Shown here: piece by piece, positions 36,048 through 53,354 of the stretch
Layout: each line of letters begins with the position of its first letter
Position numbering within the stretch: position 1 is the first letter of the stretch
Assembly (NCBI GenBank): GCA_943704425.1
Contig: CALSCP010000894.1
Span: 1 to 64,000 of the forward strand
Origin: Ministeria vibrans ATCC 50519
Lineage: Eukaryota > Protista > Filasterea
Reading direction: 5' to 3'
DNA: 64,000 nt
Made by a program: the position numbers and the translations under genes
Notes under the pieces: generated by a model
Databases searched by the model: none
What the model was told of the DNA's origin: nothing
The model's input: only the letters and a program-made list of their open reading frames with translations

Positions 36048-37913
36048 ATGCGCAGGGCTAGCTTCTTGCTATGCTTCTGTTTTCTTAGTAGCATGGCGTT
36101 CCTGTTGATGTCAATTGTCCTACTCCGTCAAGATCACATTTTGGAAGAGACCGAAAGCATGCAAATCCTTTCAACAGCCACAACAGACCTCCCTGCCTCA
36201 CTTGGGACGCGGCAATCCCGCGTTGATATGATGAGGAGCCTGGCGATGCGCTGTGGCGAGCCTGCAGCGGACGGGGTTCGTCTTGAGCGCCAACAATGCG
36301 ATCGGCACATTCCATTGCCGCCAGAGTGGCTTCCGCTCAATCCAACGTTCATGAGGATCCCCGGCGTCTCCAACCTGCTGCTGCTGCTCTGGCGCGTCAA
36401 AATGGTGCCGTTCAAAAGGGGCACATCAGCATGGCCAACGGACATTGGAGTTGCGCTGATGGAGTTGGACTCAGGCACACTCATCCCCCACAACGTCCCA
36501 TTCGATGCTGTCCCCTTTACAAACGTTAATCTTGTCAATCTTAAAGAGGTGGCGCGTGGCCGGAATCAAACCGTCGCGGAGTTGTTTGAAGGTCGGAAAA
36601 CTTTTCTGTCCATTGATGCGACGTACTGTTTGAAAACAAAGGATCTACGACCTGTGTGGTGGCGCAACCAGCTGTACCTGTTGACGACGCACGGGTGCGG
36701 CAACGAGCGAGAAGTGCTTGTTCCGTTTCACTTGACCATGTCGCGAGACGCCCAGGGGAGCGTGCGGCGCTGGCGAGCCTGGGTCAGCTTCTCTGAGCCG
36801 CGCTACTTCATTGTCGAGCCTCGACCAGACCCACAGCCCAGTTTTGGTGACTACATCGAGTTTGATGATGTATCCCGCGGTTCTCGACGACCACAGCCAC
36901 CATCACGTCTTGAGAAGAACTGGGCCGTCCTGTCGGTTCCTTCCACCAATGACTCCCACTCTCTCTTCATGGTGCGGCATTTGTGTCCGCTCACGGCGCT
37001 GCGGTCGTTTACACTTCAGGGTGTCTTACCGCCGACAAGTGACATGTTTGGAGTGCCAGGCGTGCCATTAAACATGCCCATGCGGATTGTGGACACGGCA
37101 CCGGTGGATGCCATCACGAAACTGACGGGGAAGGCACGGCCGCACGAGCTGGCCGCATGTACGGATTGGTACACGAGCGAACACGCGGACCTGGCGACGC
37201 GCAATCCGATGCATGTGTACCCGCCTTTTACCGAGCGCAATGCAACCTCGACAGACACACTTAGTGAGCGTCCCACGGAGTGTACTGTGGCGCCCTTGCA
37301 TGTCAATGCGACGGCCGATCCGCACTGGTACCTTGACATACCCGCGTGTCTGCGTCACGAGTTGCACGGGCGGGCGTGGCGTGGGGGCAGCGACATGGTT
37401 CATGTGCTGCCTCGTGGCAGACAGAAGGACGCAGAGAGTATGCTGTTTCTGGGCTCGGCCCACATCAAAGTGTGGCAGTCGGATCATGTCGTCGCGTTCT
37501 ACTACCATTTCTTTTATGTACTGCGTGTGGTCCACTCGCCGATGCGCAATGCATCGGTGTCGCTGCTGTCTGCGTCGCGTCTGTTCCGTTTCCACCAGCG
37601 ACGTGCGCCCGCTCGTGAATTCAACACGGGTGTACTTCGCGTCTCACCTGACACTGTGCTGCTCACGTACGGCCAGGGAGTTCGAGGCGACCGTGCCTTT
37701 GTTGCCTTTGTCTCGACGGACACCATTGAAAGGATGTTGCACGACACGATTGAGTTTGGTGCGTTTGATCGTCGCAATGAGGAGCATGTGGAATCGTTGT
37801 CGCTGAGTCTCAATGCGTCGTATGAAAGCGACATATTTACTCAGAAATGGGGGATGGCGGAACAAATTGACATTGTGCCTCGACAGTGGAATCGTTTCAC
37901 TGGGAGGGACTGA
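36048..37913 (+). CDS. EKNW-type propeller paralog 3 (621 aa), near-identical to paralog 2
   Basis: ATG at 36048 (MRRASFLLCFCFLSSMAFLLMSIVLL signal-anchor). Same motifs as paralogs 1 and 2. Intronless. Confidence 0.78.
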   Translation: MRRASFLLCFCFLSSMAFLLMSIVLLRQDHILEETESMQILSTATTDLPASLGTRQSRVDMMRSLAMRCGEPAADGVRLERQQCDRHIPLPPEWLPLNPTFMRIPGVSNLLLLLWRVKMVPFKRGTSAWPTDIGVALMELDSGTLIPHNVPFDAVPFTNVNLVNLKEVARGRNQTVAELFEGRKTFLSIDATYCLKTKDLRPVWWRNQLYLLTTHGCGNEREVLVPFHLTMSRDAQGSVRRWRAWVSFSEPRYFIVEPRPDPQPSFGDYIEFDDVSRGSRRPQPPSRLEKNWAVLSVPSTNDSHSLFMVRHLCPLTALRSFTLQGVLPPTSDMFGVPGVPLNMPMRIVDTAPVDAITKLTGKARPHELAACTDWYTSEHADLATRNPMHVYPPFTERNATSTDTLSERPTECTVAPLHVNATADPHWYLDIPACLRHELHGRAWRGGSDMVHVLPRGRQKDAESMLFLGSAHIKVWQSDHVVAFYYHFFYVLRVVHSPMRNASVSLLSASRLFRFHQRRAPAREFNTGVLRVSPDTVLLTYGQGVRGDRAFVAFVSTDTIERMLHDTIEFGAFDRRNEEHVESLSLSLNASYESDIFTQKWGMAEQIDIVPRQWNRFTGRD

Positions 37914-38172
37914 GAAATTTAATGTAATGAAGGTTAACACAAGTATTGTATATACACACAGTATAAATATGCAAACAAAAACTCAGTCAAGTTCATCGTA
38001 CACGTGTCATGTGTCACACGTATATCAAACAGATGAAATTGGTCATGCCCGACATGCCAAATTGCCAGTCACACAGCCAACTGTCACAACTAACTCACGA
38101 CCTCACCTGTTTGTTGATCGATCACTATAGTCAATCACTGTCTTTGCTGTTTTCTTTCATCTTCCTCTCATC

Positions 38173-41100
38173 ATGACGCACGTCTTAGTGCTTCTTGCCA
38201 CACTTCTAAGCTGCTCGAGTACGTTTCACACCTTAGCGTTCCTTTTCAAAAAAGCGCATCGAGAGTTGTTACGTCACAAACCATTCTTATCACTGCAATC
38301 GCCGTCGCCACGCTCGCTCGCCCCGCCATGCCATTTAACCCGCGGCTTTGGTCCGCTTTTACCTGTTGTCCCATCCAATGAAGCACTCTTTTGTGCGTTG
38401 TCATGGAAAACCCGGAAAATTAAAAAAAAACGCTTACGTATATCTTTTTTTAATATAATTGCCCTTCTTAGGACTATCTTTAGGAGGTGTCACCACGACA
38501 GCCTTTGGTGTTGAGGTGGAGTTTGCCGGGCGAGGCAGCATTGCGCTGCGCCACGTCAACGAGGCGGCTGTCGACAATTATCTGCTGGTTGTTTCGCTGG
38601 TTGCACGTCACTACGCACCCGATGAATATCCGCTCACTTCCCACACGGTTCGCATGGCGCCCCACCCCACCATGCCAGACCGGTTTCCACCTCGTCGCCT
38701 GCACTCTGTCGTGTGGACGGATCCGCAGGGGCGTCCCTGGCGAGTCGAGCCCGAGTACGTCTCACACGGTGTCTATGACGGCTATGAGCTTGTCTCACCC
38801 CCCATGAGCAACGCGAGCGAATTTGCCGCTGCCCTTCACGACGTCCTTGCCTCCGGTCTGGTGGGTGCTGGTGAGCGCAGCGCCACACACATTCATGTTG
38901 ACGCCCAGGCGTTGCTGCAGTGTGAGGCCCCCGGTCTCGCCCTTGCCAACCTCCTCATCCTCAGCGAAAACTACGACGAGGTCGTGCGCGCACTCTTTGG
39001 CACCCGCCATAACGGTGGCGCCGACAATGAGTTCTCTCTGTCGCTCCAACGCTCCCATCCAAAGCTCCTCCGCCAACTTACTGCACTGTCTGCGACCGAA
39101 CGCACAATGACACAAATTGTCGCGATCTTCGACCAGCACCGCAACCACGAGCTGCTGCGCTACGGCGGCGACAAGACCAAGTTGTGGAAGTATCTCGCAG
39201 TGAGCCCTGCGTCACTTGTCAACCTCGAGCCTGACCATCATCGTCACGGCAGCCAGACTGGTGGTACCATTGAGTTCCGTGCCTTTGACGTGTTCCCTCG
39301 CGACTGGCAGTATGTCGCGGCCATTGAATTTGCGCGCGCCCTTGTCAACCATGCTGTCGAGCTTGCTCGCGATAACCATGCCGTCACTTTCAAGTTGGTC
39401 CCCGTCAACACCTCGACCATTGAAACGCTCCTGCGCACTCTTCAACTGGACCAACTCGACGTCTTCCATCGGCTGCCCCTCGACAGCAACAGCAACAGTG
39501 ACGATGATTCCATCAGCCGCGACTTCTCCGTCGACTCGTCTCAGCTCATGCGCGACCGTCGCAACACGGACTGCATTGAACCATGTCAAAATGGTGGCAC
39601 TTGCAGCTGTGCCATTGACACCAAAGGGTCCACCTGCGAGTGTGTGTGCGAACCGAGCTTTACTGGTCTCTCGTGCGAGTCTGTTGTCGACACCTGTCTT
39701 TCCAATCCTTGTCCTCCACCCCACAGCGCCTGCACCGGCCACGGCACATCCAATGGAATGGACACACTCGTGGTCGCTGACGCATACGCCGCGTCCTCCT
39801 TCACGCTTCAGATTGACCTGGGCAGTGCGTCCGTGAGCTCCCCGAGCGGCGGTGGCACCGTCATTGTCACCACTGCCATCGACGTCAACGATGCCAATGA
39901 GTTTGTCAGCATCACTGCCGGTGGCCAGCGTTTCGACTTCTTTTTTGGCAGCGAAAACCTTCCCGACTGCGATCTTCAGGAATCCAGTGCTGACCTCACA
40001 CCCGCCGAAATGGCCTCCTTCCTTCAGAATGCCACCGCTGCCGGTGTAGTGCCCGTTACTGTCTCTCCCGTGGGCCTCACCACCCCCTGTGTGGACCCCT
40101 CCGTCACCGTTCAGGTCATCAACTACGCCATTGGCTTCAGCTGTGACTGTCAAGTGGGATTTACTGGCGCTTCCTGCGAGACAAACATCGACGACTGTCA
40201 AGTGGACACATGCGCAAACGGTGGCACTTGCCTTGACGGCGTCGAATCGGTTCTCTGCGAGTGTGTCACGGGATTCACCGGTGACTTTTGCGATGTGCCT
40301 ACCGACGAGTGTGCCTCGTCACCCTGCCAAAACGACGGTGCATGTTTTGACAGCGTCAACACCTTCTTCTGCTCCTGCCCCACCGGCTTCGAAGGGGACT
40401 TTTGCGAGACAGACCTCGACGAGTGTGCGTCGAGCCCCTGTCGCAACGGCGGCACCTGCAACAACCTTGACGGATTCTTTCACTGCGACTGCCCCCTGGG
40501 CTTCTCTGGCACTGACTGTGGCGTCAACGACGACGAGTGTGGCTCGTCACCATGCGAAAACGGTGGCACATGTCTCGACGCAGTTGACGGCTTTACGTGT
40601 GCGTGTACCTCGGGTTTTGTCGGCGCTCTTTGCCATGAGGACGCTGACTCGTGTGCCTCGTCGCCTTGCGCGCCTCCCATGAGTGTGTGCACACCACACG
40701 GCAGTGCTTCGGGCAACTCCGTTCAGCATATTCCCGATGTCTACTCGGCGTCCTCGTACACGCTCTCCTTTGACCTGGGTGTCGCCTCGGTGGGCTCCGT
40801 GGGCGGTCAGCTTGCCGTCAACGGCGCTATCGATGTCAACGAACCTTCCGAGTTCATTCGCGTCCAGGCGGGCTCGCAATCGTTTGACGTGTTCAATGGC
40901 GAAGAGGAACTCAGTGACTGTGCCGCCCAGAGTCTTGTTCTTGATTTCACCCTTACCGAGTGGAATCGCTTCACCGAGAGCCTCTCGCCCAATGGCATCC
41001 TCAACGTGACAGTCACTCCGGTGGGTGTAAACACGCCCTGTGTTGACCCGTCGCTCACCGTTGAGCTAACGAGCTACGCCGCTGGCTTCCAGTGCGCGTG

Positions 41101-44100
41101 TGACCCGGGATTCACGGGTGCCTCGTGCGAGACCAACATTGACGAGTGTGCCGCTCTCCCCTGCCAAAACGGCGGTACTTGTTTTGACAGCATCAATGCA
41201 TTTTTCTGCCTCTGCGCGAGGGGATTTACCAACGACGTGTGCGATCAAGAGCTTGACGAGTGTGAGTCGGAGCCGTGCCTGAACAACGGGGTGTGCCAGG
41301 ACACTGTCAACGGGTTCGTCTGCAATTGTGAGCAGGGCTACACGGGCACACTGTGCCAAAGCGATACGAACGAATGTCTTTCGGCACCCTGTTTCAATCA
41401 GGGTACGTGCGAGGACCACGCGGGGTTTTTTGCGTGCCAGTGCCTAACGGGATTCTCCGGTATTGACTGCTCAATCGACGAAGACGAATGTCTTTCCTTG
41501 CCCTGTGCCAACGGCGGAACGTGCACGGATGCGGTCGCTGGCTTTACCTGCGCGTGTTCTGCTCAGTTTGTGGGTACCACGTGCAACAATGACGTCGACA
41601 GCTGTATGTCATCTCCTTGTTCGCCTCCCATGGACGTGTGCATTGCGCATGGTTCCGAGTCGGCAAGCGACACACAAGTTATTGCCAATGCGTACACTCA
41701 GGCATCGTACACGCTCACCATGAACTTGGGTGCTGCTGGTGCCAGTGCCGTCTCGGGCACGCTCGCTGTAACCACGTCGGCCGATGTAAACAGTCTCTCG
41801 GAAATTGTGCGTGTCGCTGCTGGAGGTCAATCCTTTGACTTTTTTAATCTGGTGGATGAGGCTGACAACTGCACGACACAGTCAGCGCTGCTCACACTCA
41901 CTCCTAACGAATGGTCGTCGTTCATGCAAGCGTCCTCCAATGGTCAGGTGGACCTAACTGTCACGCCCATCGGTCTTGACTCGCCCTGTGTCGACCCGTC
42001 CATTACTGTGACCCTCGCGAGCTACCCGCCGGGCTTTCAGTGCGCCTGTCAGCCTGGTTTTACCGGTACTGCGTGCGAGACAAACATTGACGACTGTGCC
42101 CCGTCACCCTGTGACAATGGTGCAACATGTGTCGATCTTGTGAATACTTTTTCGTGCATCTGCGACGAGGGATTCTCGGGCGAAGCGTGCGAGGAGGACA
42201 TTGACGAGTGCCTGTCGGAGCCGTGCCTCAACAATGCCGCGTGCTTCGACGATCCAGGCACCTTTGTGTGCGAGTGTCTGGCTGGCTTCACTGGTGCTCG
42301 GTGCGAGACAGACATCAACGAGTGTGCCTCGGCACCGTGCGTGAACGGCGCCACATGTGTCAATCACGATGGGTTTTTTGAGTGCCAGTGTGTACCGGGG
42401 TTTTTTGGCGAACGCTGCGAGACTAACCAAGACGAATGTGGGTCGTCTCCGTGCGAGAATGGTGCAACGTGCACGGATTCAATAGATGGCTTTACGTGTA
42501 CGTGTGCCAGCGAATTTAACGGAGTGCGGTGCGAAAATGCCATTGCATCGTGTCTGTCGTCGCCCTGTGCAGCACCCATGGACGTCTGCATTGCACACGG
42601 CCCCACAACAAGCTTAACCTCGGCTGCGGTCCCCGATGCCTACACGGCACCAAGCTACACGCTCACGCTTAATCTGGGCCCCGGTGTGGCCAGCTTGGCG
42701 GTCAGTGCAACGCTCACTGTGACTTCGTCTATTGACATCAACCAACTCGGCGAGTACATATTCGTGGCGGCTGGCGCGCAATCCTTTGACTTCTTCAACA
42801 TTGACGAGACCCTTGACAACTGCACACTGCAGACGGCAACTATCGATATGACTCTCAGCGAAGTGTCGCTCTTTCTTCAGGACGCCTCGCCCGTGGGCCA
42901 AGTCAATGTGACCGTCACCCCGACGGGCGTTACCATGCCGTGTCTTGACCCGTCCATCAGCATCACCTTGGAAACGTACGAGGCCGGCTTTCTTTGCGTT
43001 TGTCCGAGTGGCTTCACCGGCGCCGCCTGTGAAATCAACATTGACGATTGTCCGCCCTCCGTGTGTGCCAATGGAGGCTCCTGCGTGGATGGCGTGAATG
43101 CCTTTTCCTGTACCTGCAGTCAGGGCTTCACCGGCGAATTTTGCGAGGAAAATGTCAACGAATGTCTCTCGGAACCCTGCCTCAACTTGGGTCAGTGCGT
43201 TGATGGCGTCGGCGGCTACACTTGCTCGTGCGTGGCGGGCTTTACAGACCTTGACTGTGGCGTCGACATCAACGAATGCACTTCGTCGCCTTGCCTTAAT
43301 GGTGGCACTTGTGAAGACCATTCGGGCTTCTTTGCCTGTCAATGTCTGCCTGGATACTCCACAAACGATTGCTCGATCAACAACGACGAGTGTGCCTCAG
43401 CGCCTTGCCAGAACGGTGGTACCTGCGTCGACGGAGTCGATGGGTTTGCCTGCACGTGTCCCGCTGAGTTTCTCGGCTCGTCCACCTGCAACACGCGCAC
43501 TAACGCGTGTCAGTCGTCACCGTGCAGCGCCCCAATGGACGTGTGTACGGCACACGGGCCCGCAAGCGGCTCCGACTCGCATGTCATTGCCGATGCCTAC
43601 ACGTCGTCGCACTTTTCATTTACACTCGATTTGGGCCCACAGTCGTCCACCACCGCCGGCGGGCTTTTGCTTGTGGAGACAGCCATTGATGTGAACGAAC
43701 TATCCGAGTCGGTGCGCGTAAGCGCGGGCAATCAAGTGTTCGACTTTTTCAACTCGGGTGACGTTGACCTGCCCGACTGTACGCAGCAGTCGCTCGTGGC
43801 CGAGTTGACTGGCAACGAAATGGCAGGCCTGATGCAAGACTCGCTAGATGGGGTGGTTACGGTGAATGTGACTTTGTTTGGTGTGGACACGACCTGTCCG
43901 CAGACGTCGCTCACGGTCGAACTGACAAACTATGCGCCCGGCTTTCTTTGTGGTTGTGCTACCGGCTTTACCGGTACGGCGTGCGAGACCAACATAGACG
44001 ACTGTGGTGTCGAGGCGTGCCTCAATGGTGGAACGTGTGTGGATGGTGTCGAGTCGTTTTCATGTGTGTGTGCTACTGGATTTTTTGGTGAGAGCTGTTC

Positions 44101-47100
44101 TCTCAACGTGGACGAGTGTGCCTCGCAGCCATGCATCAACGGTGGCGTGTGTGTTGACGGTGCCAACAGTTTTGTCTGTCAATGTCCTGCCGGCTTTACC
44201 GGTGCCGATTGCACGCAGAATGTCGACGAATGTCTTTCGCAACCTTGCCTGAATGGGGGCTCTTGCTCGGAGAGTGTCAACGATTTTGCTTGTGTGTGTC
44301 CACTCGAGTTTACTGGCGCGCTCTGCGGGTCCGCCATTGACTTTTGTGCGTCATCTCCCTGCGTGGAGGTGTGCACCGCACACGGTAGCGCAACGAGTGT
44401 CGACTCGCACACCATTGTCGATGCATACACCGCCCCCATGTACTCCTTCTTGCTCAATGTGGGCTCCAGCGCGAGCACGGGTGGCGGCCGTCTGACCGCA
44501 ACAACTGCCATTGATGTAAACGAGCCGGGTGAGTACGCAGTGGTGTCGGCAGGTGACGTCGCCTTCGAGTTTTTTCGCACCAGCAGCGGTGCACTGCCCA
44601 ACTGCACGTCGATTGAAGAACTTGCTGACTTGTCACCGAGTGAAATGGCGGCGCTTGTGCGTACCGCTGTCAATGGTCAAGTGCGTGTCAACGTGTCGCT
44701 TGTCGGTGTCGACACTCCCTGCGGCAACCCGTCGCTCACGGTGCAGTTGACCAACTTTGCAGCGGGATTCACATGCAGCTGCCGCGCTGGCTTTACTGGT
44801 GTTGATTGCGATGTGAACCTCGACGACTGTGTTGGAGATCCCTGCAAAAATGGTGCAACTTGTGTCGATGGAGTTCAGTCGCATGTGTGCGTGTGTGCTT
44901 CCGGCTACACTGGCACCGAGTGTGCCGAAGACATTAACGAATGCGCTTCAGCGCCGTGCGAAAACGACGGGACCTGCATCGACGCCGTTGCTGGGTTTGC
45001 GTGTGCTTGTGTCTCTGGGTACACGGGCGTCAGCTGCCAAGTGAACATTGACGAGTGTGCGTCAACTCCATGCGAGAACGGCAGTACATGTACCGATTTG
45101 GTCAACGAGTATTCCTGTTTGTGTGCATCTGGATACACTGGAAACGAATGCGAAGTTGACATTGACGAGTGCGCGTCTCAGCCGTGCGGTCTGGGCACAT
45201 GCAACGATGGCACGGGCAGCTTCACGTGTACATGTGGACCGCGCAACACGGGTGTATTCTGTGAGACGGCCATTACGGGTAACGACTGTGCGTCTCAGCC
45301 GTGCCAGAGTGGCGGCACCTGTCTCAATCTGTTTGAAGGTGTTCTCTGCCTGTGTCAGCAGGGCTTTACCGGCGAACTGTGCGAGACAGCCCAAGACGAC
45401 TGTGCGTCGACACCCTGCAGCGCTCCTCTGAGTGAGTGTGTCTCGCACGCGACCCAGACAGGCAACGCGACACACGTGGTGCCTGATATGTACGCAGCGG
45501 CGTCGTTCACGTTCACACTGGACCTGGGTACCGCGTCTACCTCGTCGGGGGGCGGTCTCGTGACGGCACGCACGTCCATTGATGTGAATGAAATCAACGA
45601 GTTTGTGCGTGTCTCTGCTGGCAGCATGAGCTTTGAGTTCTTCAACCTTTTTGAACAGGACGACTGCCAAGAGGATATTGTGGAGCTTGAGCTGACGGCA
45701 TCCGAGATGGCCGGTGTGATGCAGGGCTCCAACAATGGCATAGTGACGGTCACGGTGACTCCTGTGGGTGTGGACACGGCGTGTCCCGACACCTCGTTTA
45801 CCCTGACGCTGACCAACTATGCAGTGGGATTCACCTGCACGTGTCCCTCTGGATTCACGGGAGCCGCGTGCGAGACGAACATTGACGATTGTGTGTTTGC
45901 ATGCGACAACGGGGGCACATGCCTTGATGGTGTTGAGTCCTTTGTGTGTTTGTGCGCCACGGGCTTTTCCGGCAATGACTGCGTTGAGAATATTGACGAG
46001 TGTGCCTCGACGCCTTGTCTCAACGGCGGCAACTGCGACGACGGTGTCAATAGCTACGTGTGCGTGTGTACAAGTGGATTTACCGGCGATCTGTGCGAGA
46101 CGGACATTGACGAGTGTGCGTCGCTGCCGTGCCACGGAGGGGGCACTTGTGTCGACTCCGTGGACGGCTTCACCTGTGAGTGCCCGTCGGGACGCACTTC
46201 GACGGACTGTTCGGCGGACACCGACGAGTGTGCTTCGGCACCTTGCAAAAACAGCGCGACATGCGTCAACCTCGACGATCGTTTCAGTTGTGTGTGTCCT
46301 GCTGGGTTCACCGGAATTTTGTGCGAGGTGGATATCGACGAGTGTGCGTCTGCTCCGTGCGAAAATGGTGGCTCGTGCACTGATGCGGGCGCAAATATCT
46401 TTACCTGTGCGTGCGCATCGGGATTTTCGGGCTCTACGTGTACAGTTGACATTGACGAGTGTGCCTCTGCGCCTTGCCACAACAGCGGCACATGTACAAA
46501 CTTGATAAATGCGTTCGCCTGCACCTGCGTCGTTGGTTTCACTGGGGCAGCGTGTGATGTCGACCAAGACGAGTGCACTTCAGCGCCGTGTGAGAATGGC
46601 GCCACGTGCACCAATGCTGGTTTGAATGCGTTTACCTGTACATGTGTGGCGGGATTTTTTGGCGCGACGTGCGCTTCGAATATTGACGAGTGTGCGTCGA
46701 CTCCGTGCCTGAATGGAGCCACCTGCGACGATGATGTGAACGGGTTTGTGTGTGTGTGTCTTTCAGGGTTTAGCGGGACCCTCTGCGCTGACAATGTCGA
46801 TGAGTGTGAGTCGCAACCGTGTCAGAACGGCGCGTCTTGTGTGGATGGTCAGGGATCGTTTGCGTGTGCCTGTGTGACGGGATACACTGGCCCTGCTTGC
46901 GAGTTTGACGTTGACGAGTGTGTGTCCTCGCCGTGTGCCAATGGTGCAACCTGTTTCAACACCATTGGCAGTAGTATGTGTGTGTGCGTGCAAGGGTACA
47001 CAGGCTCTCGCTGCACCGATGAGATTGACGAATGTGTTTCCAGCCCCTGCCTGAACGGGGCGACGTGTGCCAACGACGCGTTCAACATTGGCGAGTTTAT

Positions 47101-50100
47101 TTGCACGTGTGCCGCCGGCTTTACTGGCAGTCAATGTGCGATTGACATTGACGACTGTGCGTCGGCACCGTGTGCTAACGGAGCAACGTGCCAGGACGGT
47201 TTTTCACAGTACACATGTGTGTGCGCGTCAGGGTACACGGGGGTCGCGTGTGTTTCTGACATTGACGAGTGCCTCTCGTCTCCCTGCGGGAACGGTGGTT
47301 CCTGTGTTGACCAGCCCGGTGCTTATCAGTGCCAGTGTGTTGCAGGCTTTTTTGGCATTCGCTGTCAGACCAACGTTGATGAGGTAACAGAGAAGAGCTA
47401 AGAGAGCAGAACAGAACATGAAAGGATTATTATGAATAATTTATTTTGATATTAATAATATTATTATAATTTTTTTCTTCTTATTTTATAATTATTTTTA
47501 GTGCGCCTCGAGTCCGTGTGTCAATGCGGGCACATGTCTGCAGACGAGCGAGAATGATTTGTGGACGTGCGTGTGTGCGGCAGGATATACAGGTGTACAA
47601 TGCGAGTCTGAGGTTGACGAGTGTGCTTCTGTGCCGTGTACAAATGGAGGTACGTGTGTTGATGCAGGATTCAACATGTTTACGTGCACTTGTGCGCTGG
47701 GATTTGCGGGTCCGCTGTGTTCTGTGAACGTTGACGAGTGCGCGTCGACTCCGTGCCAGAATGGTGCAACGTGCACCGATGGAGTGTCATCGTACTTGTG
47801 TGTGTGCGCCACTGGATTTACCGGCAGCGTGTGTGAAAGTGACGTGAACGAGTGTGCCTCAAACCCATGTAACAATGGCGGAACGTGCAATGACGGCGCC
47901 GCCACATTCAGCTGTGTGTGTGCTGCAGGATTTAATGGCATTGACTGTGCCATCAATGTGAATGAGTGTGCGTCACTCCCATGTCATAATGGTGCGTCAT
48001 GTCGCGATGGTGTCCTGTCGTACGAGTGCGAGTGCCCTGCCGGATACACAGGCATTCTATGCGAATCGGATGTGGACGAATGTGCCTCACAGCCGTGTCA
48101 GAATGGCGGCAGTTGCTTGGCACCAGCTTCCGGGGCCTTTGTGTGTGGCTGTGTGGCCGGCTACACTGGCAATGTGTGCCAAGTGGACACGGACGAGTGT
48201 GCGTCGTTGCCGTGCCAGAATGGCGGCTCATGTACCGACCAAGTCAACGGCTTTGCCTGTGCCTGTGTTCAAGGTTACTTCGGCAGCCTGTGCGAGAATG
48301 ACATTGACGAATGCCAGTCGTCTCCCTGTCTCAACGGAGCCACGTGCTCCCAAGGGTCGGTTGCCAACTTGTGGACGTGCGAGTGTCCCGTGGGTTTTAC
48401 TGGAGTTGCTTGTCAATCTGAAATTCAAGAGGTACGCGGAGAAGATGTAATTTTAATGATGAATGTTCATCAGCTGTTTTATCTTTGTTATTCTTTGTTT
48501 AATTTTTGTGTTATTAAAATAATAATTCAATGTTTTCTTGATTAAATCTTTCTGTGTTTCTAGTGTGCTTCGAGTCCGTGTGTTAATGGTGGAACATGCG
48601 ATGAGGGAACGTCTGTGGACAGCTGGGTTTGCATGTGTGTGAATGGATTCACGGGAGTTGACTGTGCTTTTGATGTGAACGAATGTGCGCCAGAGCCGTG
48701 TCTGAATGAGGGAGTGTGCAGTGAGATTCCCAATGGCGGAGGATTCAGCTGTGCCTGTGCTGTTGGGTTCACGGGTGTGCAGTGTGAGTCGGATGTGGAC
48801 GAGTGTGCGTCGTCGCCGTGTCATCCGTTGTCGTCGTGTGTCAATATCGAGGCACAGTTCTACTGCGTGTGTGCCGAGGGTTTTTTTGGCGACTTGTGCG
48901 AGACGGAGGTGGACGAGTGTCTTTCGGACCCCTGCGAGAATAGTGGAACATGCCAGGATCTGGTGGACGGCTTCAACTGCGCTTGTCCCGTTGGCTTCAC
49001 CGGCGACGTGTGTGATGTGGACACGCTCGACGAGTGCGCGTCGTTCCCCTGTCATGGTGGAGGCACGTGTGTCGAGGACGACACGGGGAAGAGCTACACA
49101 TGTGCGTGCACGAGCAAGTACACGGGTGTAATGTGTGAGACGGACATTTTTGACGATTGTGCCTCGTCGCCTTGTCTCAACGGCGGCGTGTGTGCCACAT
49201 CCGTGTTTATCGAGAGTCAGGGGCAGGTTAACATTGAAAATGGCTATGTCTGTGGCTGTCCGACCGGATTTGTTGGAGATCGTTGTGAGAGCAACGTCAA
49301 CGAGTGCGACTCGTCTCCGTGTCAGAATGGCGGCGAGTGTTTTAACGGTGTCAACGCGTTCCTCTGCCAGTGTCCTCAGGGATTCGAAGGGAACACGTGC
49401 GAGGTGAGCGTGTCGCAGTGCAACTCGTCACCTTGCCACAACAACGGTGGGTGTCGTTCCGACGGTGCAGGCGGTTTCACTTGCTTGTGTTCTTCAGGGT
49501 TTGAGGGGGACCTGTGCGAGACAGATATTGACGAGTGTGCGTCGTCGCCGTGCGCCAACAGCGCCACCTGTGTCGATTTGGCTGGAGGGTTTCTGTGCAC
49601 CTGTGCGACGGGATTCACAGGAGCGACGTGTGGCAGTGACGCTGACGAGTGTACCTCTACACCGTGTGCCAATGGCGGAACATGTGTGGACGCCTTCAAT
49701 GCATTTACCTGTACTTGTGCGAGTGGCTACACCGGAGTTGATTGTGCTGTCGATGTGAACGAGTGCGAGTCGTCACCGTGCACCAACGGCGGCACATGCA
49801 TCAACTCGATCAACTTGTATGCCTGTGTCTGCGCTGTGGGCTTTACGGGATTCTCGTGTCAGAGTAACGTCGACGATTGCCAGTCGAATCCATGTGCGAA
49901 TGGCGGCACCTGCATTGACGGTCTTGCAACATTCACATGCCACTGTGCGCAGGGCTTTTTTGGCGCTGCGTGTGATGGCAACACCAACGAGTGCGCGTCG
50001 CAGCCGTGTGCGAATGGCGGGACTTGCCAAGACGCTGCAAATGGATTCAATTGTGTGTGTCCCTCTGGATTTAGCGGTGCCACCTGTGCGGAAGACGTCG

Positions 50101-53100
50101 ATGAGTGTGCGTCACTGCCCTGTTTGAATGGCGCAACGTGTACGGACGCATCCAATGCGTATACATGCCAGTGTGTCAGTGGGTTTGATGGAGCACAATG
50201 CGCAAACAACATTGATGAGTGTGTTTCGCAGCCTTGCTTGAATGGCGGAAGCTGTGTGGATGCAGTGAATGGGTTTACGTGTGTGTGTGTGTTAGGTTGG
50301 ACAGGAACAAACTGTGCCGTGGGCATTGATGAGTGTGCATCGTCGCCCTGTGCCAACGCGGGCACGTGTGTCGACCACATTGGCAGATTTACCTGTGTGT
50401 GTGCTGCCGGGGAGACGGGCGCAACGTGTCTCGAAGACGTGGATGAGTGTGCGTCGTCTCCGTGTGCCAACGGCGGAAGCTGTGCGGAATCTGAAAAGGG
50501 ATCGTTTACATGCGTGTGTGCCAGTGGTTTCTTTGGTCTCACGTGTGCCAGCAATACCGACGAATGTGCGTCGTCACCGTGCCGCAATGGAGGATTATGT
50601 GTGGACGGGGCGAATGGCTACACGTGTGCGTGTACGTCCGGCTGGACCGGTAGCATCTGTTCGACCAACGTCAACGAGTGTAACTCTTCTCCCTGTGCCA
50701 ACGGTGGAACGTGTACCGACACGGCAGGTTCGTTTGCGTGTGCGTGTCCCGTAGCATTCACTGGCATCACGTGCACGCTAATAAACGACGAGTGTGCGTC
50801 AACACCGTGTCTCAACGGCGGCACTTGCGTCTCGGGCCTGAGTTCGTTTGGGTGCGTGTGCGCAAGTGGCTTCGCGGGAACAGTGTGTTCTGTCAACACT
50901 GACGAGTGTGCCTCCATGCCATGTCTCAACGGTGCCACGTGTCTTGACGGTGTCGCCGGGTTCACTTGTGCGTGTGCCACTGGCTTTGACGGTTTGCTTT
51001 GTGCCAATGATATTGACGAAGTAAACATGCAAGGAACAAACCTTACGTTTGAAAAAACAATGCTCATTCTTTTTTTTTTACTAGTGTGCTTCAACACCTT
51101 GTCAGAATGGCGGCTCTTGCTCCACGCCAAGTGTGGGCGTGTTTAGCTGTACGTGTGCAACAGGCTTTACTGGAGCCACTTGTGTGAATGATCTCAATGA
51201 GGTATGAACAATAATAATAAGAAAAATGGAACCCGCCTCCAAACCTTAAAAAAAAACACCGAAAATTAGTTTTTATTTAAATATTGTTATTTTTAACATC
51301 ATAATTTTTTAGTGTCTGTCTTTGCCGTGTCTCAATGGCGGCTCGTGCGTGACACCGTCGCTGGGGGTGTTCACATGTGTGTGCGCGAGTGGGTACACAG
51401 GTGCACAGTGTGCAGTGGACATTTCGGAGTGTGCGTCGTCACCGTGTCAGAATGGAGGAGTGTGCAGCGAGCCGAGTGTAGGAGTGTATGCGTGTGCGTG
51501 TGCAAGTGGGTTTACGGGAGCACAGTGTACGGTGAACATTGTGGAGTGTGCGTCGTCACCATGCCTAAATGGGGGAGTGTGCAGTGAGCCAGGTGTGGGA
51601 GTGTATACGTGTGCGTGTGAGAGTGGCTTCACAGGCGAGACGTGTGCGAGCAATGTTGATGAGTGTGCGTCGTCGCCTTGTGGACATGGTGGTACGTGTA
51701 CAGATGCTGTCGGGGCATGGTCATGCGCGTGTGCGACAGGCTACACTGGTGTTGCGTGCGAGACGAATCTCGACGACTGCTTTACATTACCATGCTCCAA
51801 TGGTGGCACTTGTGTTGACGGAGTGACTTCTTTTGTGTGCGCGTGTGCGCCGGGCTACACCGGAACACTGTGCAGCATTGACGTCGATGAGGTAGCAACG
51901 ATGATGAATTTTATCATTATTATTATGTTGTATGTGTATTGACTTTTGTGTATGTCTGTGTTTTTTATTCTTCTTTTTATTGTTTTTTTCTGTTTGTTTA
52001 GTGCGCATCGAATCCATGTTTGAATGGGGCAGTGTGCATGGAAAGTCAAGTGGCTGGGTTCTTTGAGTGTGTGTGCACAACGGGAACGTTTGGCCCGACG
52101 TGTGCAACGAAAAGCGTGGTGTGTAGCGAGCCGACGGTACGCTACAATACGGTGACACCGGGCAGCGCGATCACATTCACAGAGGACTATGGCAATGGCG
52201 TGATACTAACAGTGACCATTCCGTCGGGTGCGATTACGGGTGGAGGAGCGCCCTTTGTGATGTCGAGTGTGTACCTTGCGCCATCGTGTGCCAATCTTGA
52301 CCAAGTGCCCAACGGCCTTCCGACGCTGTCACCGCTGTTTGAGTTGCAGCCAAGTATGACCTTTGCCGTGCCGGTGACGCTGGCGCTGCAGCCAGTGTCG
52401 GTAACGAGCGAGACAAACGTGACAATGTTGATCACAAGCAACACGACGACGGGTCCGTGGGAGCCGGCAGACAACGTTGTGGTGGACGTGGGAGCCCAGC
52501 GGGTGTCGGGCCAGGTGACGCACTTTTCGACGGTGGGCGTGTTCTCGACGACAGTCGGCGGAACGAACACGGGTGGACAGAGCAGTGGGGGTAGCAAGGG
52601 CTGGATTGCCGCGGTGGTCATAGGTGTGCTTTTGCTCATTGTGGTGTTGGTGATTCTCATGGCGATGTACCGGCGACGGCACAAGGAAAAAAAGCCACTG
52701 GACCACGGACTGGACCAGGTGGAGATGTATGGGTACCGGGGAAGCATCAGCCACTCTGCGGGTCTGGCGGGCGGTGCGGGCATAGAAGCGAGTCGAGCGC
52801 GCCATCAGAGCACACGCAAACTGCCACCGGCACCTGCGGGTGGGCTGCCGGGGGCTGGAGGACCGCCACCTGAGCCGACGCTGACGCCTGCGGAACTGCG
52901 CCAGCAGACGATGGACCGACTGTTTGTGGACCAGGACCTGGTGTACCGTGAGGCGGCTACCAGTCCTCTGGGCTCGATTCCTTCGACAAACGACTTGGAG
53001 ATGCGCGAGGGCGGTGAGGGTGTCGCTGCTAGTGCCCATCGAGCGCCCAGTCGCGAAGGCACTCTGAGCACACGAGAGGACGCGAGTCTCTATGAGTTTG

Positions 53101-53354
53101 AGCGACTGCGCACCAGCACAAGTCACTCGATGCGCTCAGTGCCCGACGACCGCGCGAAGCTAATGAGCGCCGGCGGCATGTCTATGGCGACCCACGACAT
53201 GCTTAACTACTCGACAACATCTGCTGCAGGTCCCATGGACATGAGTGAGCTGGAATCGGGCGATGAGATGCGCTACGCAGCCGATCGCGAGCGATCAAGG
53301 CGTCCCTCGCTGAATCTCGGCCAGAATGTGTCTTATACCGAGGATTATGTCTAA
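38173..53354 (+). CDS. Giant type I membrane protein (~4797 aa): signal peptide, amidoligase-like domain, RDRR site, ~81 EGF/cbEGF modules, ZU5-like HFS domain, TM helix, cytoplasmic tail
   Basis: Exons 38173-38218, 38472-47383, 47502-48431, 48564-51020, 51085-51201, 51313-51891, 52002-53354; all GT-AG and phase-consistent, 14394 nt total. Spliced N-terminus [23 protein letters not shown] repeats D(I/V)DEC.S.PC.NGG.C...[31 protein letters not shown] followed by RRRHK. Confidence 0.9.
38504..39370 (+). other. Amidoligase_2-like (COOH-NH2 ligase, glutamine-synthetase/GCS fold) domain
   Basis: Ordered motifs [34 protein letters not shown] and GTIEFR parallel the family pattern FGVEIE / ELVSP / CGLHVHV / RY / GTIEFR. 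Confidence 0.82.

Follow-up and report, generated by a model that had tools for sequence, protein, structure and literature searches.

A predicted exported amidoligase-fold domain at the tip of a giant EGF-repeat membrane protein in the filasterean Ministeria vibrans

Carboxylate-amine (COOH-NH2) ligases of the Amidoligase_2 kind, together with YbdK/GCS2, glutamate-cysteine ligase, glutamine synthetase and PafA/Dop, are known as cytosolic proteins of bacteria, phages and fungi. Here we describe a gene of Ministeria vibrans ATCC 50519, found in a window of 64,000 nucleotides (nt) from contig CALSCP010000894.1 (positions 1 to 64,000 of the contig, assembly GCA_943704425.1), in which a domain of this fold forms the head of a long stalk of epidermal growth factor (EGF) modules. 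The head resembles the described ligases in a Pfam score above the cut-off, in its fold (Z 11.6-13.6) and in its strand-borne ExE, E, H and ExR motifs. It differs from them in that its clade carries leaders and sits N-terminally on large exported proteins, and in that two Arg residues conserved in bacteria are replaced in the eukaryotic branch. The fold itself is known; what is new in relation to described amidoligases is the topology, the partner modules and the two clade-specific Arg replacements. Our literature searches returned no paper that describes an amidoligase as exported or as fused to EGF modules.

Other described systems share parts of this layout. In Notch, Crumbs and other giant EGF-array receptors, too, many EGF and calcium-binding EGF modules follow one another in a row, one transmembrane helix crosses the membrane, and proteolytic sites lie near the membrane as well as at a distance from it; such sites are putative in the protein described here. 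Unlike in Notch, the N-terminus is an enzyme fold and the juxtamembrane module is ZU5/GAIN-like with an HFS motif. Pfam found neither LNR/NRR, ankyrin nor DSL domains in the protein, only EGF-type families in the stalk region and no RAM or ankyrin parts in the last exon, and by this domain content the gene is not a member of the Notch family. Teneurins are holozoan membrane proteins that also combine EGF repeats with a module from exported bacterial proteins. They differ in being of type II and in carrying their bacterial part, a YD-shell with a toxin-like domain, at the C-terminus as opposed to an N-terminal ligase fold, and they are unrelated in sequence. Lumenal enzymes such as peptidylglycine alpha-amidating monooxygenase, Fam20C and VLK offer precedents for type I proteins with dibasic sites and for the use of ATP in the lumen, but their folds and chemistry are unrelated, and the head described here is a predicted enzyme only.

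Few unicellular lineages are closer to animals than the filastereans, whose surface proteins record how components for adhesion and signalling came together before multicellularity. In the present case an exported bacterial enzyme fold appears to have been captured, mounted on stalks of EGF and LamG modules and retained in at least two filasterean genera, which parallels the origin of teneurins.

An amidoligase-fold head in one exon with EGF repeats

Coordinates are those of the whole window on the forward strand, and the gene and all of its features lie on the + strand. A stop-free frame of 2,980 codons (38459-47401) carries the Amidoligase_2 domain, then an RDRR motif and then EGF repeats, so that head and EGF modules lie in a single uninterrupted exon. 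Past residue 371 of this frame Pfam finds only EGF, hEGF or calcium-binding EGF domains. The gene is real and is predicted to encode a type I membrane protein made up of a candidate leader, the amidoligase-fold head, a linker with RDRR, 81 EGF modules, a ZU5-like domain with HFS, a transmembrane helix and a tail. Summed exon lengths come to 14,394 nt, or about 4,797 residues, with all exons in phase; this size is the addition of individual exon lengths from a predicted splice model. The features of the initial annotation were each confirmed at their place, including the gap-free exon shared by enzyme and EGF modules, the count of about 81 such modules and the ZU5-like module with its HFS motif and transmembrane helix.

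The head, with its C-terminal helical extension, spans 38498-39448, as delimited by PF12224, the fold model and an audit of motifs. The first 330 residues of the frame match PF12224 (Amidoligase_2) over profile positions 3-244 of 245 at E 8e-6, with 26.3 bits against a cut-off of 22. Among the matches listed by a language-model atlas there were PF12224 clusters only, at 0.95-0.96 for the best of them. An AlphaFold model built from 28 family sequences reached a pLDDT of 91.2 and a pTM of 0.90, and it matched plant glutamate-cysteine ligase (2gwc; Z 13.6 over 243 aligned residues), YbdK (1r8g; Z 13.3 over 224), Dop (Z 11.7 over 216) and glutamine synthetases (Z about 11.6 over about 213-215). 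Foldseek gave a probability of 1.00 for these same families. By profile and by predicted fold, then, the head belongs to the Amidoligase_2 / glutamine-synthetase-like ligase fold, and the identity first proposed stood up to comparison with both PF12224 and the solved structures. Sequence searches of a solved-structure library, with the single domain and with the family profile, returned nothing relevant, and NCBIfam gave just a sub-threshold match to the YbdK family.

Five motifs can be read directly in the sequence: FGVEVEF (38504-38524), ELVSPP (38786-38803), THIHVD (38885-38902), WKY (starting at 39185) and GTIEFR (39263-39280). The conserved ExE, E, H-x-H and E-x-R fall on predicted strands (residues 7-15, 97-103, 134-139 and 261-267). 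In domain numbering, E10, E12, E101, H135, E263 and R265 are strand-borne and 95-100% conserved in the clade. In the glutamine-synthetase-like superfamily such strand positions hold the ligands of metal and phosphate.

The N-terminus is predicted to come from a separate exon. In the long frame Met first appears at residue 66, within the domain, so an upstream spliced leader exon is required for an intact N-terminus. Such an exon is found at 38173-38218, where a start codon opens a 15-residue hydrophobic leader, a candidate signal peptide (Met-Thr-His, nine hydrophobic residues, Ser-Cys-Ser), followed by a GTACGT donor. Inspection of donor and acceptor places an inferred GT..AG intron of 253 nt and phase 1 behind the signal-peptide exon (38219-38471). 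Its acceptor, tag|G at 38470-38471, puts the start of exon 2 at 38472 in phase 1 and restores the frame. The same arrangement recurs on the contig L009, which encodes the related protein P0008: a classical leader exon with an identical GTACGT donor and a 64-nt phase-1 intron immediately before the F-G-x-E-x-E motif. In one of two further paralogs in the genome (contig C932) an acceptor of the same phase lies four residues ahead of this motif, and proteins derived from Pigoraptor transcripts have leader, domain and EGF modules in one frame. The spliced signal peptide of the initial annotation corresponds to a candidate leader exon with a frame-restoring junction, mirrored in L009.

The first exon of the C932 gene is absent from the assembly because of a ten-N gap just upstream of the amidoligase exon (L002:2560-2580, on contig C932 of genome G000), beyond which lies a myosin-motor-like gene. 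For the other paralog (contig C1856) a leader exon was not recognisable in the 500 nt upstream of the amidoligase exon. There, a run of about 38 A residues occupies the presumed intron directly upstream of that exon (L005:8055-8092, minus strand).

Several lines speak for a genuine fusion. Run X5 yields a 3,180-nt Logan contig, built separately from the assembly, maybe from the same reads, that spans 37888-40600 with zero differences, including the region near 39400-39570 where a misjoin had been considered. An 11.5-kb contig from ENA encodes an identical protein, also with EGF domains (P0001). Both paralogs have the same order of head and EGF modules at an identity between paralogs of 38-42%: in C932 more than 60 EGF modules come after the head, and in C1856 two EGF modules and LamG. 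The GC content of the head, overall and at third codon positions (GC3), is that of the remaining gene. Given the shared frame, the agreeing contigs, the paralogs and the equal composition, a chimera or contaminant is very unlikely. At 40150-40600 contigs of all four runs pile up with high summed depth and many apparent joints between EGF repeats, which looks like cross-mapping among the many EGF genes of the genome as opposed to a rearrangement.

Relatives of the head and its probable bacterial origin

The protein is not a solitary case and belongs to a small family. Its eukaryotic members are three genes of the M. vibrans genome, three Pigoraptor proteins, P0008 (head, EGF modules and three LamG domains) and a eukaryotic gene on an 830-kb ENA metagenome contig (L027:5989-9483). 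In this last gene a leader precedes an amidoligase-like head, which an intron of about 120 nt interrupts, and after the head come about 900 residues of a different Cys-rich repeat with Pro/Thr-rich linkers. Judging from these repeats, it is a second, independent kind of extracellular stalk beneath the same head.

A search of 1.84 billion representative proteins gave only 72 matching clusters at E up to 1e-3, a rare clade within Amidoligase_2. Most family members are long proteins with the domain at their extreme N-terminus. Nearest among the bacteria are Planctomycetota proteins with HHH_3/T2SSK motifs, about 430-2,460 residues long and mostly above 1,100, and the domain was detected in 6 of 201 sampled Planctomycetota genomes; a scan with the single protein turned up three metagenome-assembled genomes (MAGs), two of them titled Planctomycetota. 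In a more distant bacterial group some members stand alone, at 355-400 residues, and others carry HEAT repeats. Neither the HHH_3/T2SSK nor the HEAT partner domains gave a clear functional hint, and the gene neighbourhoods of bacterial members held ordinary housekeeping and transport genes with no common partner. A protein of about 4,520 residues from a Kofleriaceae MAG (P0036 / P0083; named ADP-ribosyltransferase in its source) has two internal matches to the domain, and these matches in a giant myxobacterial protein hint that some bacterial members are part of multi-domain, effector-like proteins.

A hydrophobic segment lies ahead of the ExE motif in 50 of the 51 family members with a complete N-terminus, so the whole clade would be exported; on these predicted leaders, export is the rule in nearly all members, bacterial as well as eukaryotic. 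The initial annotation had set the secreted head against cytosolic bacterial relatives. That contrast does not hold for the bacterial source clade, which is itself already exported.

In a quick, unrooted IQ-TREE run the eukaryotic rows clustered together (support 99) and adjoined a 14-row group that includes Planctomycetota-named or Planctomycetota-MAG proteins (support 95). The two groups together (22 rows, support 100) stand apart, across a long branch, from the remaining 49 bacterial rows. The head has giant Planctomycetota proteins as its closest relatives, which points to a bacterial origin long ago. The Planctomycetota rows have the bacterial residues at positions 173, 175 and 237 and the eukaryotic rows have derived ones, which makes transfer from bacteria to an early filasterean the simpler reading. 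Most likely, on the tree and these residues, a filasterean ancestor acquired the head from bacterial relatives of the Planctomycetota carriers, and EGF and LamG modules were joined to it afterwards.

Filasterean copies also share a feature of the linker. Behind the head of the window protein lies an acidic, Ser/Asp-rich linker (39479-39562; acidic part 39479-39508) with RDRR at its end (39551-39562), three residues before the first EGF Cys (39572), which from sequence and homologous sites is a candidate target of a proprotein convertase. Of 6 filasterean-clade proteins, 5 have an R-x-[KR]-R site after the head: besides RDRR there are RLRR in C932, RHRR in C1856, RKRR in Pigoraptor vietnamica and RKKR in Pigoraptor chileana, with none in P0008. 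Since the flanking linkers cannot be aligned, recurrence of the basic site by chance is unlikely. The genome also holds two convertase-type P domains (P_proprotein, PF01483; 115 and 85 bits). The furin-type site noticed at the outset is therefore present, recurs in paralogs and in Pigoraptor, and has candidate convertases in the same genome.

State of the pocket and possible roles of the head

Conservation was measured over 63 bacterial rows, in which 44 columns are at least 80% conserved. The window copy keeps 34 of these 44 columns, among them every putative metal ligand; both Glu of ExE, E101, S132, H135, E161, N181, K235, E263, R265 and D268 are retained. That all motifs of the family are present, as had been claimed, is right for FGVEVEF, ELVSPP, THIHVD, KY and GTIEFR, but two bacterial Arg residues are replaced throughout the eukaryotic clade and a conserved Asn and Lys are missing from the window copy.

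We favour, with confidence only slightly better than even, the overall explanation of a real exported amidoligase-fold head on an EGF stalk that is probably enzymatic and cut by a convertase. On this explanation the head would be translocated into the endoplasmic reticulum (ER) and pass through the Golgi to the cell surface, where it would sit at the distal tip of the stalk. Its acidic and histidine-bearing pocket (ExE, E, H, ExR) would still bind a divalent metal and a ligand that bears carboxylate or phosphate. The head would probably be an enzyme whose targets are amide or carboxylate groups: a ligase in places supplied with lumenal ATP, or a Dop-like amidase with no net need for ATP. A furin/kexin-type convertase would cut at RDRR, after which the head could be released or retained non-covalently. 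The window copy, as the most diverged of the three paralogs, would perhaps have a weakened or altered activity.

Several observations weigh against this explanation or parts of it. Besides Thr in place of an invariant Pro at position 173 (100% in bacteria, Thr also in the other filasterean-clade copies), the window copy has His at 175, where bacteria have Arg (100%) and the other copies His; Leu at 237, where bacteria have Arg (95%) and the others His; Ser at 240, where bacteria (97%) and the others have Asn; and Ser at 243, where bacteria have Lys (87%) and the others His, Arg or Asn. In a genome search with PF12224 the window copy scored lowest of the three paralogs, at 25 bits as compared with 51.7 and 34.9. 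The mapping of motifs to catalytic residues comes from the fold match and general superfamily knowledge, as distinct from a residue-level alignment. Profile alignments of the head family to E. coli GshA and YbdK had probabilities below 1%, and a local resemblance to GshA segment 282-308 is a lead only. For transcription and splicing, possible RNA runs (X1-X3) gave only three short exact contigs at a depth of 2-4, within 38528-40004 and none over the intron, and the 38218/38472 junction was crossed by none of the reads or contigs compared with the window. For an ATP-driven ligase across the clade, a further difficulty is that the bacterial relatives carry Sec-type leaders and that, to our knowledge, the periplasm has no ATP pool. 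Their export to a place with no known ATP supply weakens the classical ligase reading, and it leaves an amidase or a pure binding role alive. The eukaryotic secretory pathway does have ATP. Taken with the replaced Arg175 and Arg237, the Leu and Ser residues peculiar to the window copy make catalysis by this copy uncertain. Possibly the pocket is still under constraint in the family with altered ligand contacts, and is weakened in the window gene.

The Leu at 237 and the Ser residues at 240 and 243 speak for a pseudoenzyme, in which fold and pocket are kept for binding or adhesion only, for example to a metal-carboxylate ligand, an extracellular nucleotide or an amino acid, and which by analogy would resemble other glutamine-synthetase-fold proteins that have lost catalysis. 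The tip of an adhesion-type stalk fits a role in recognition, and the window copy, with the weakest Pfam score among the paralogs, also has the longest terminal branch of the six filasterean-clade rows (0.8 versus 0.2-0.55). Against this, all metal-ligand motifs and the 34 columns are kept in spite of the low identity between paralogs, which exceeds what the fold alone would need, and we regard loss of catalysis as unlikely, although a real contender. The more specific proposal of an active ligase or amidase in the secretory lumen or at the surface, for the better-conserved paralogs at least, where it would add to carboxylate or amide groups of matrix, prey-wall or partner-cell molecules, cross-link them or trim them, we hold as tentative and rather doubtful. 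Effector delivery and the sensing of ATP or glutamate, which the initial annotation also put forward, would be conjectural roles. No carboxylate-amine ligase fold is so far known to act outside the cytoplasm; an active head would be the first and would define a function for the whole exported bacterial clade, and a ligase or amidase would amount to a new kind of extracellular modification, taken from exported bacterial proteins before animals arose. An inactive head would be a case in which an enzyme fold had been put to use for recognition.

The head could also act in cis, being active only in the ER or Golgi on its own stalk, on co-travelling cargo or as a folding aid, and then be removed at RDRR like a pro-domain so that the mature protein is without it. 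In all three paralogs three to five residues separate the basic site from the first EGF Cys, a basic site is found in Pigoraptor too, the P domains could belong to the convertase, and secretory-pathway kinases of the Fam20C type are established precedents for ATP-dependent enzymes of the lumen. We nevertheless judge this improbable, since partner modules vary from EGF arrays and LamG to mucin-like stretches, other Cys-rich repeats and bacterial HHH or HEAT domains, which makes a common cis substrate unlikely, and since P0008 has no basic site. An artefact, whether a chimera of the assembly or contaminating bacterial DNA fused to an EGF gene of the eukaryote, was worth considering because the culture behind the genome apparently contained bacteria and the domain has its nearest relatives among bacteria. 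The domain and the EGF modules share one uninterrupted frame and one composition, two other assemblies agree, paralogs and Pigoraptor transcripts have the same layout and spliceosomal introns flank the exon, all of which leaves an artefact with almost no probability.

The EGF stalk and its membrane end

Below the amidoligase-fold head, about 81 EGF modules extend over exons 2-7 (39572-52100), as read from Pfam EGF, hEGF and EGF_CA matches and from the CxC signature, which gives 81 modules; the total number of Cys residues is 495. Five inferred phase-0 introns interrupt the array (47384-47501, 48432-48563, 51021-51084, 51202-51312 and 51892-52001), with exon ends at 47383, 48431, 51020, 51201 and 51891 and exon starts at 47502, 48564, 51085, 51313 and 52002. 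The donors read Glu|GT, and after every acceptor the downstream open frame starts exactly at C-x-S-x-P-C.

The array is followed by a juxtamembrane domain of 150 residues (52110-52560), which models as a beta sandwich (pLDDT 77). Its best Foldseek matches were ankyrin ZU5 and the GAIN domain of BAI3, with TM scores of 0.50-0.53 and E of about 1e-3, and ankyrin ZU5 had a probability of 1.00; a Pfam ZU5 domain was not detected in the last exon. The motif H-F-S (52521-52529) lies between the last two strands of the model and is conserved in 8 of 9 paralogous copies read. The predicted beta sandwich with H-F-S in this position, here directly before the membrane, may liken the module to the autoproteolytic ZU5 domains of PIDD, UNC5CL and NLRP1 (FIIND) and to GAIN domains. 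The likeness is limited by a moderate fold match (TM score about 0.5) and by the missing Pfam ZU5 match, and the ZU5 domains of PIDD, UNC5CL and NLRP1 are cytoplasmic, whereas this one would be extracellular. With a basic site after the head and HFS near the membrane, the protein may be cut at both ends of its stalk. A predicted transmembrane helix (52602-52670) comes next, then a basic stop-transfer stretch, RRRHKEKK, and a cytoplasmic tail of about 227 residues with the stop codon (52671-53354) completes the protein.

The juxtamembrane module matches 14 places in the genome, nearly all of them in large open frames, and the copies read (L018-L026, on contigs C1664, C2846, C2584, C572, C1425, C2066, C16, C2362 and C232) directly precede a hydrophobic stretch. 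Within the stalk, several EGF modules are unusually long by their Cys pattern, at 168-195 residues (39695-45875; start residues 413, 1022, 1656 and 1930 of the long frame), and these oversized modules seem to contain an inserted domain.

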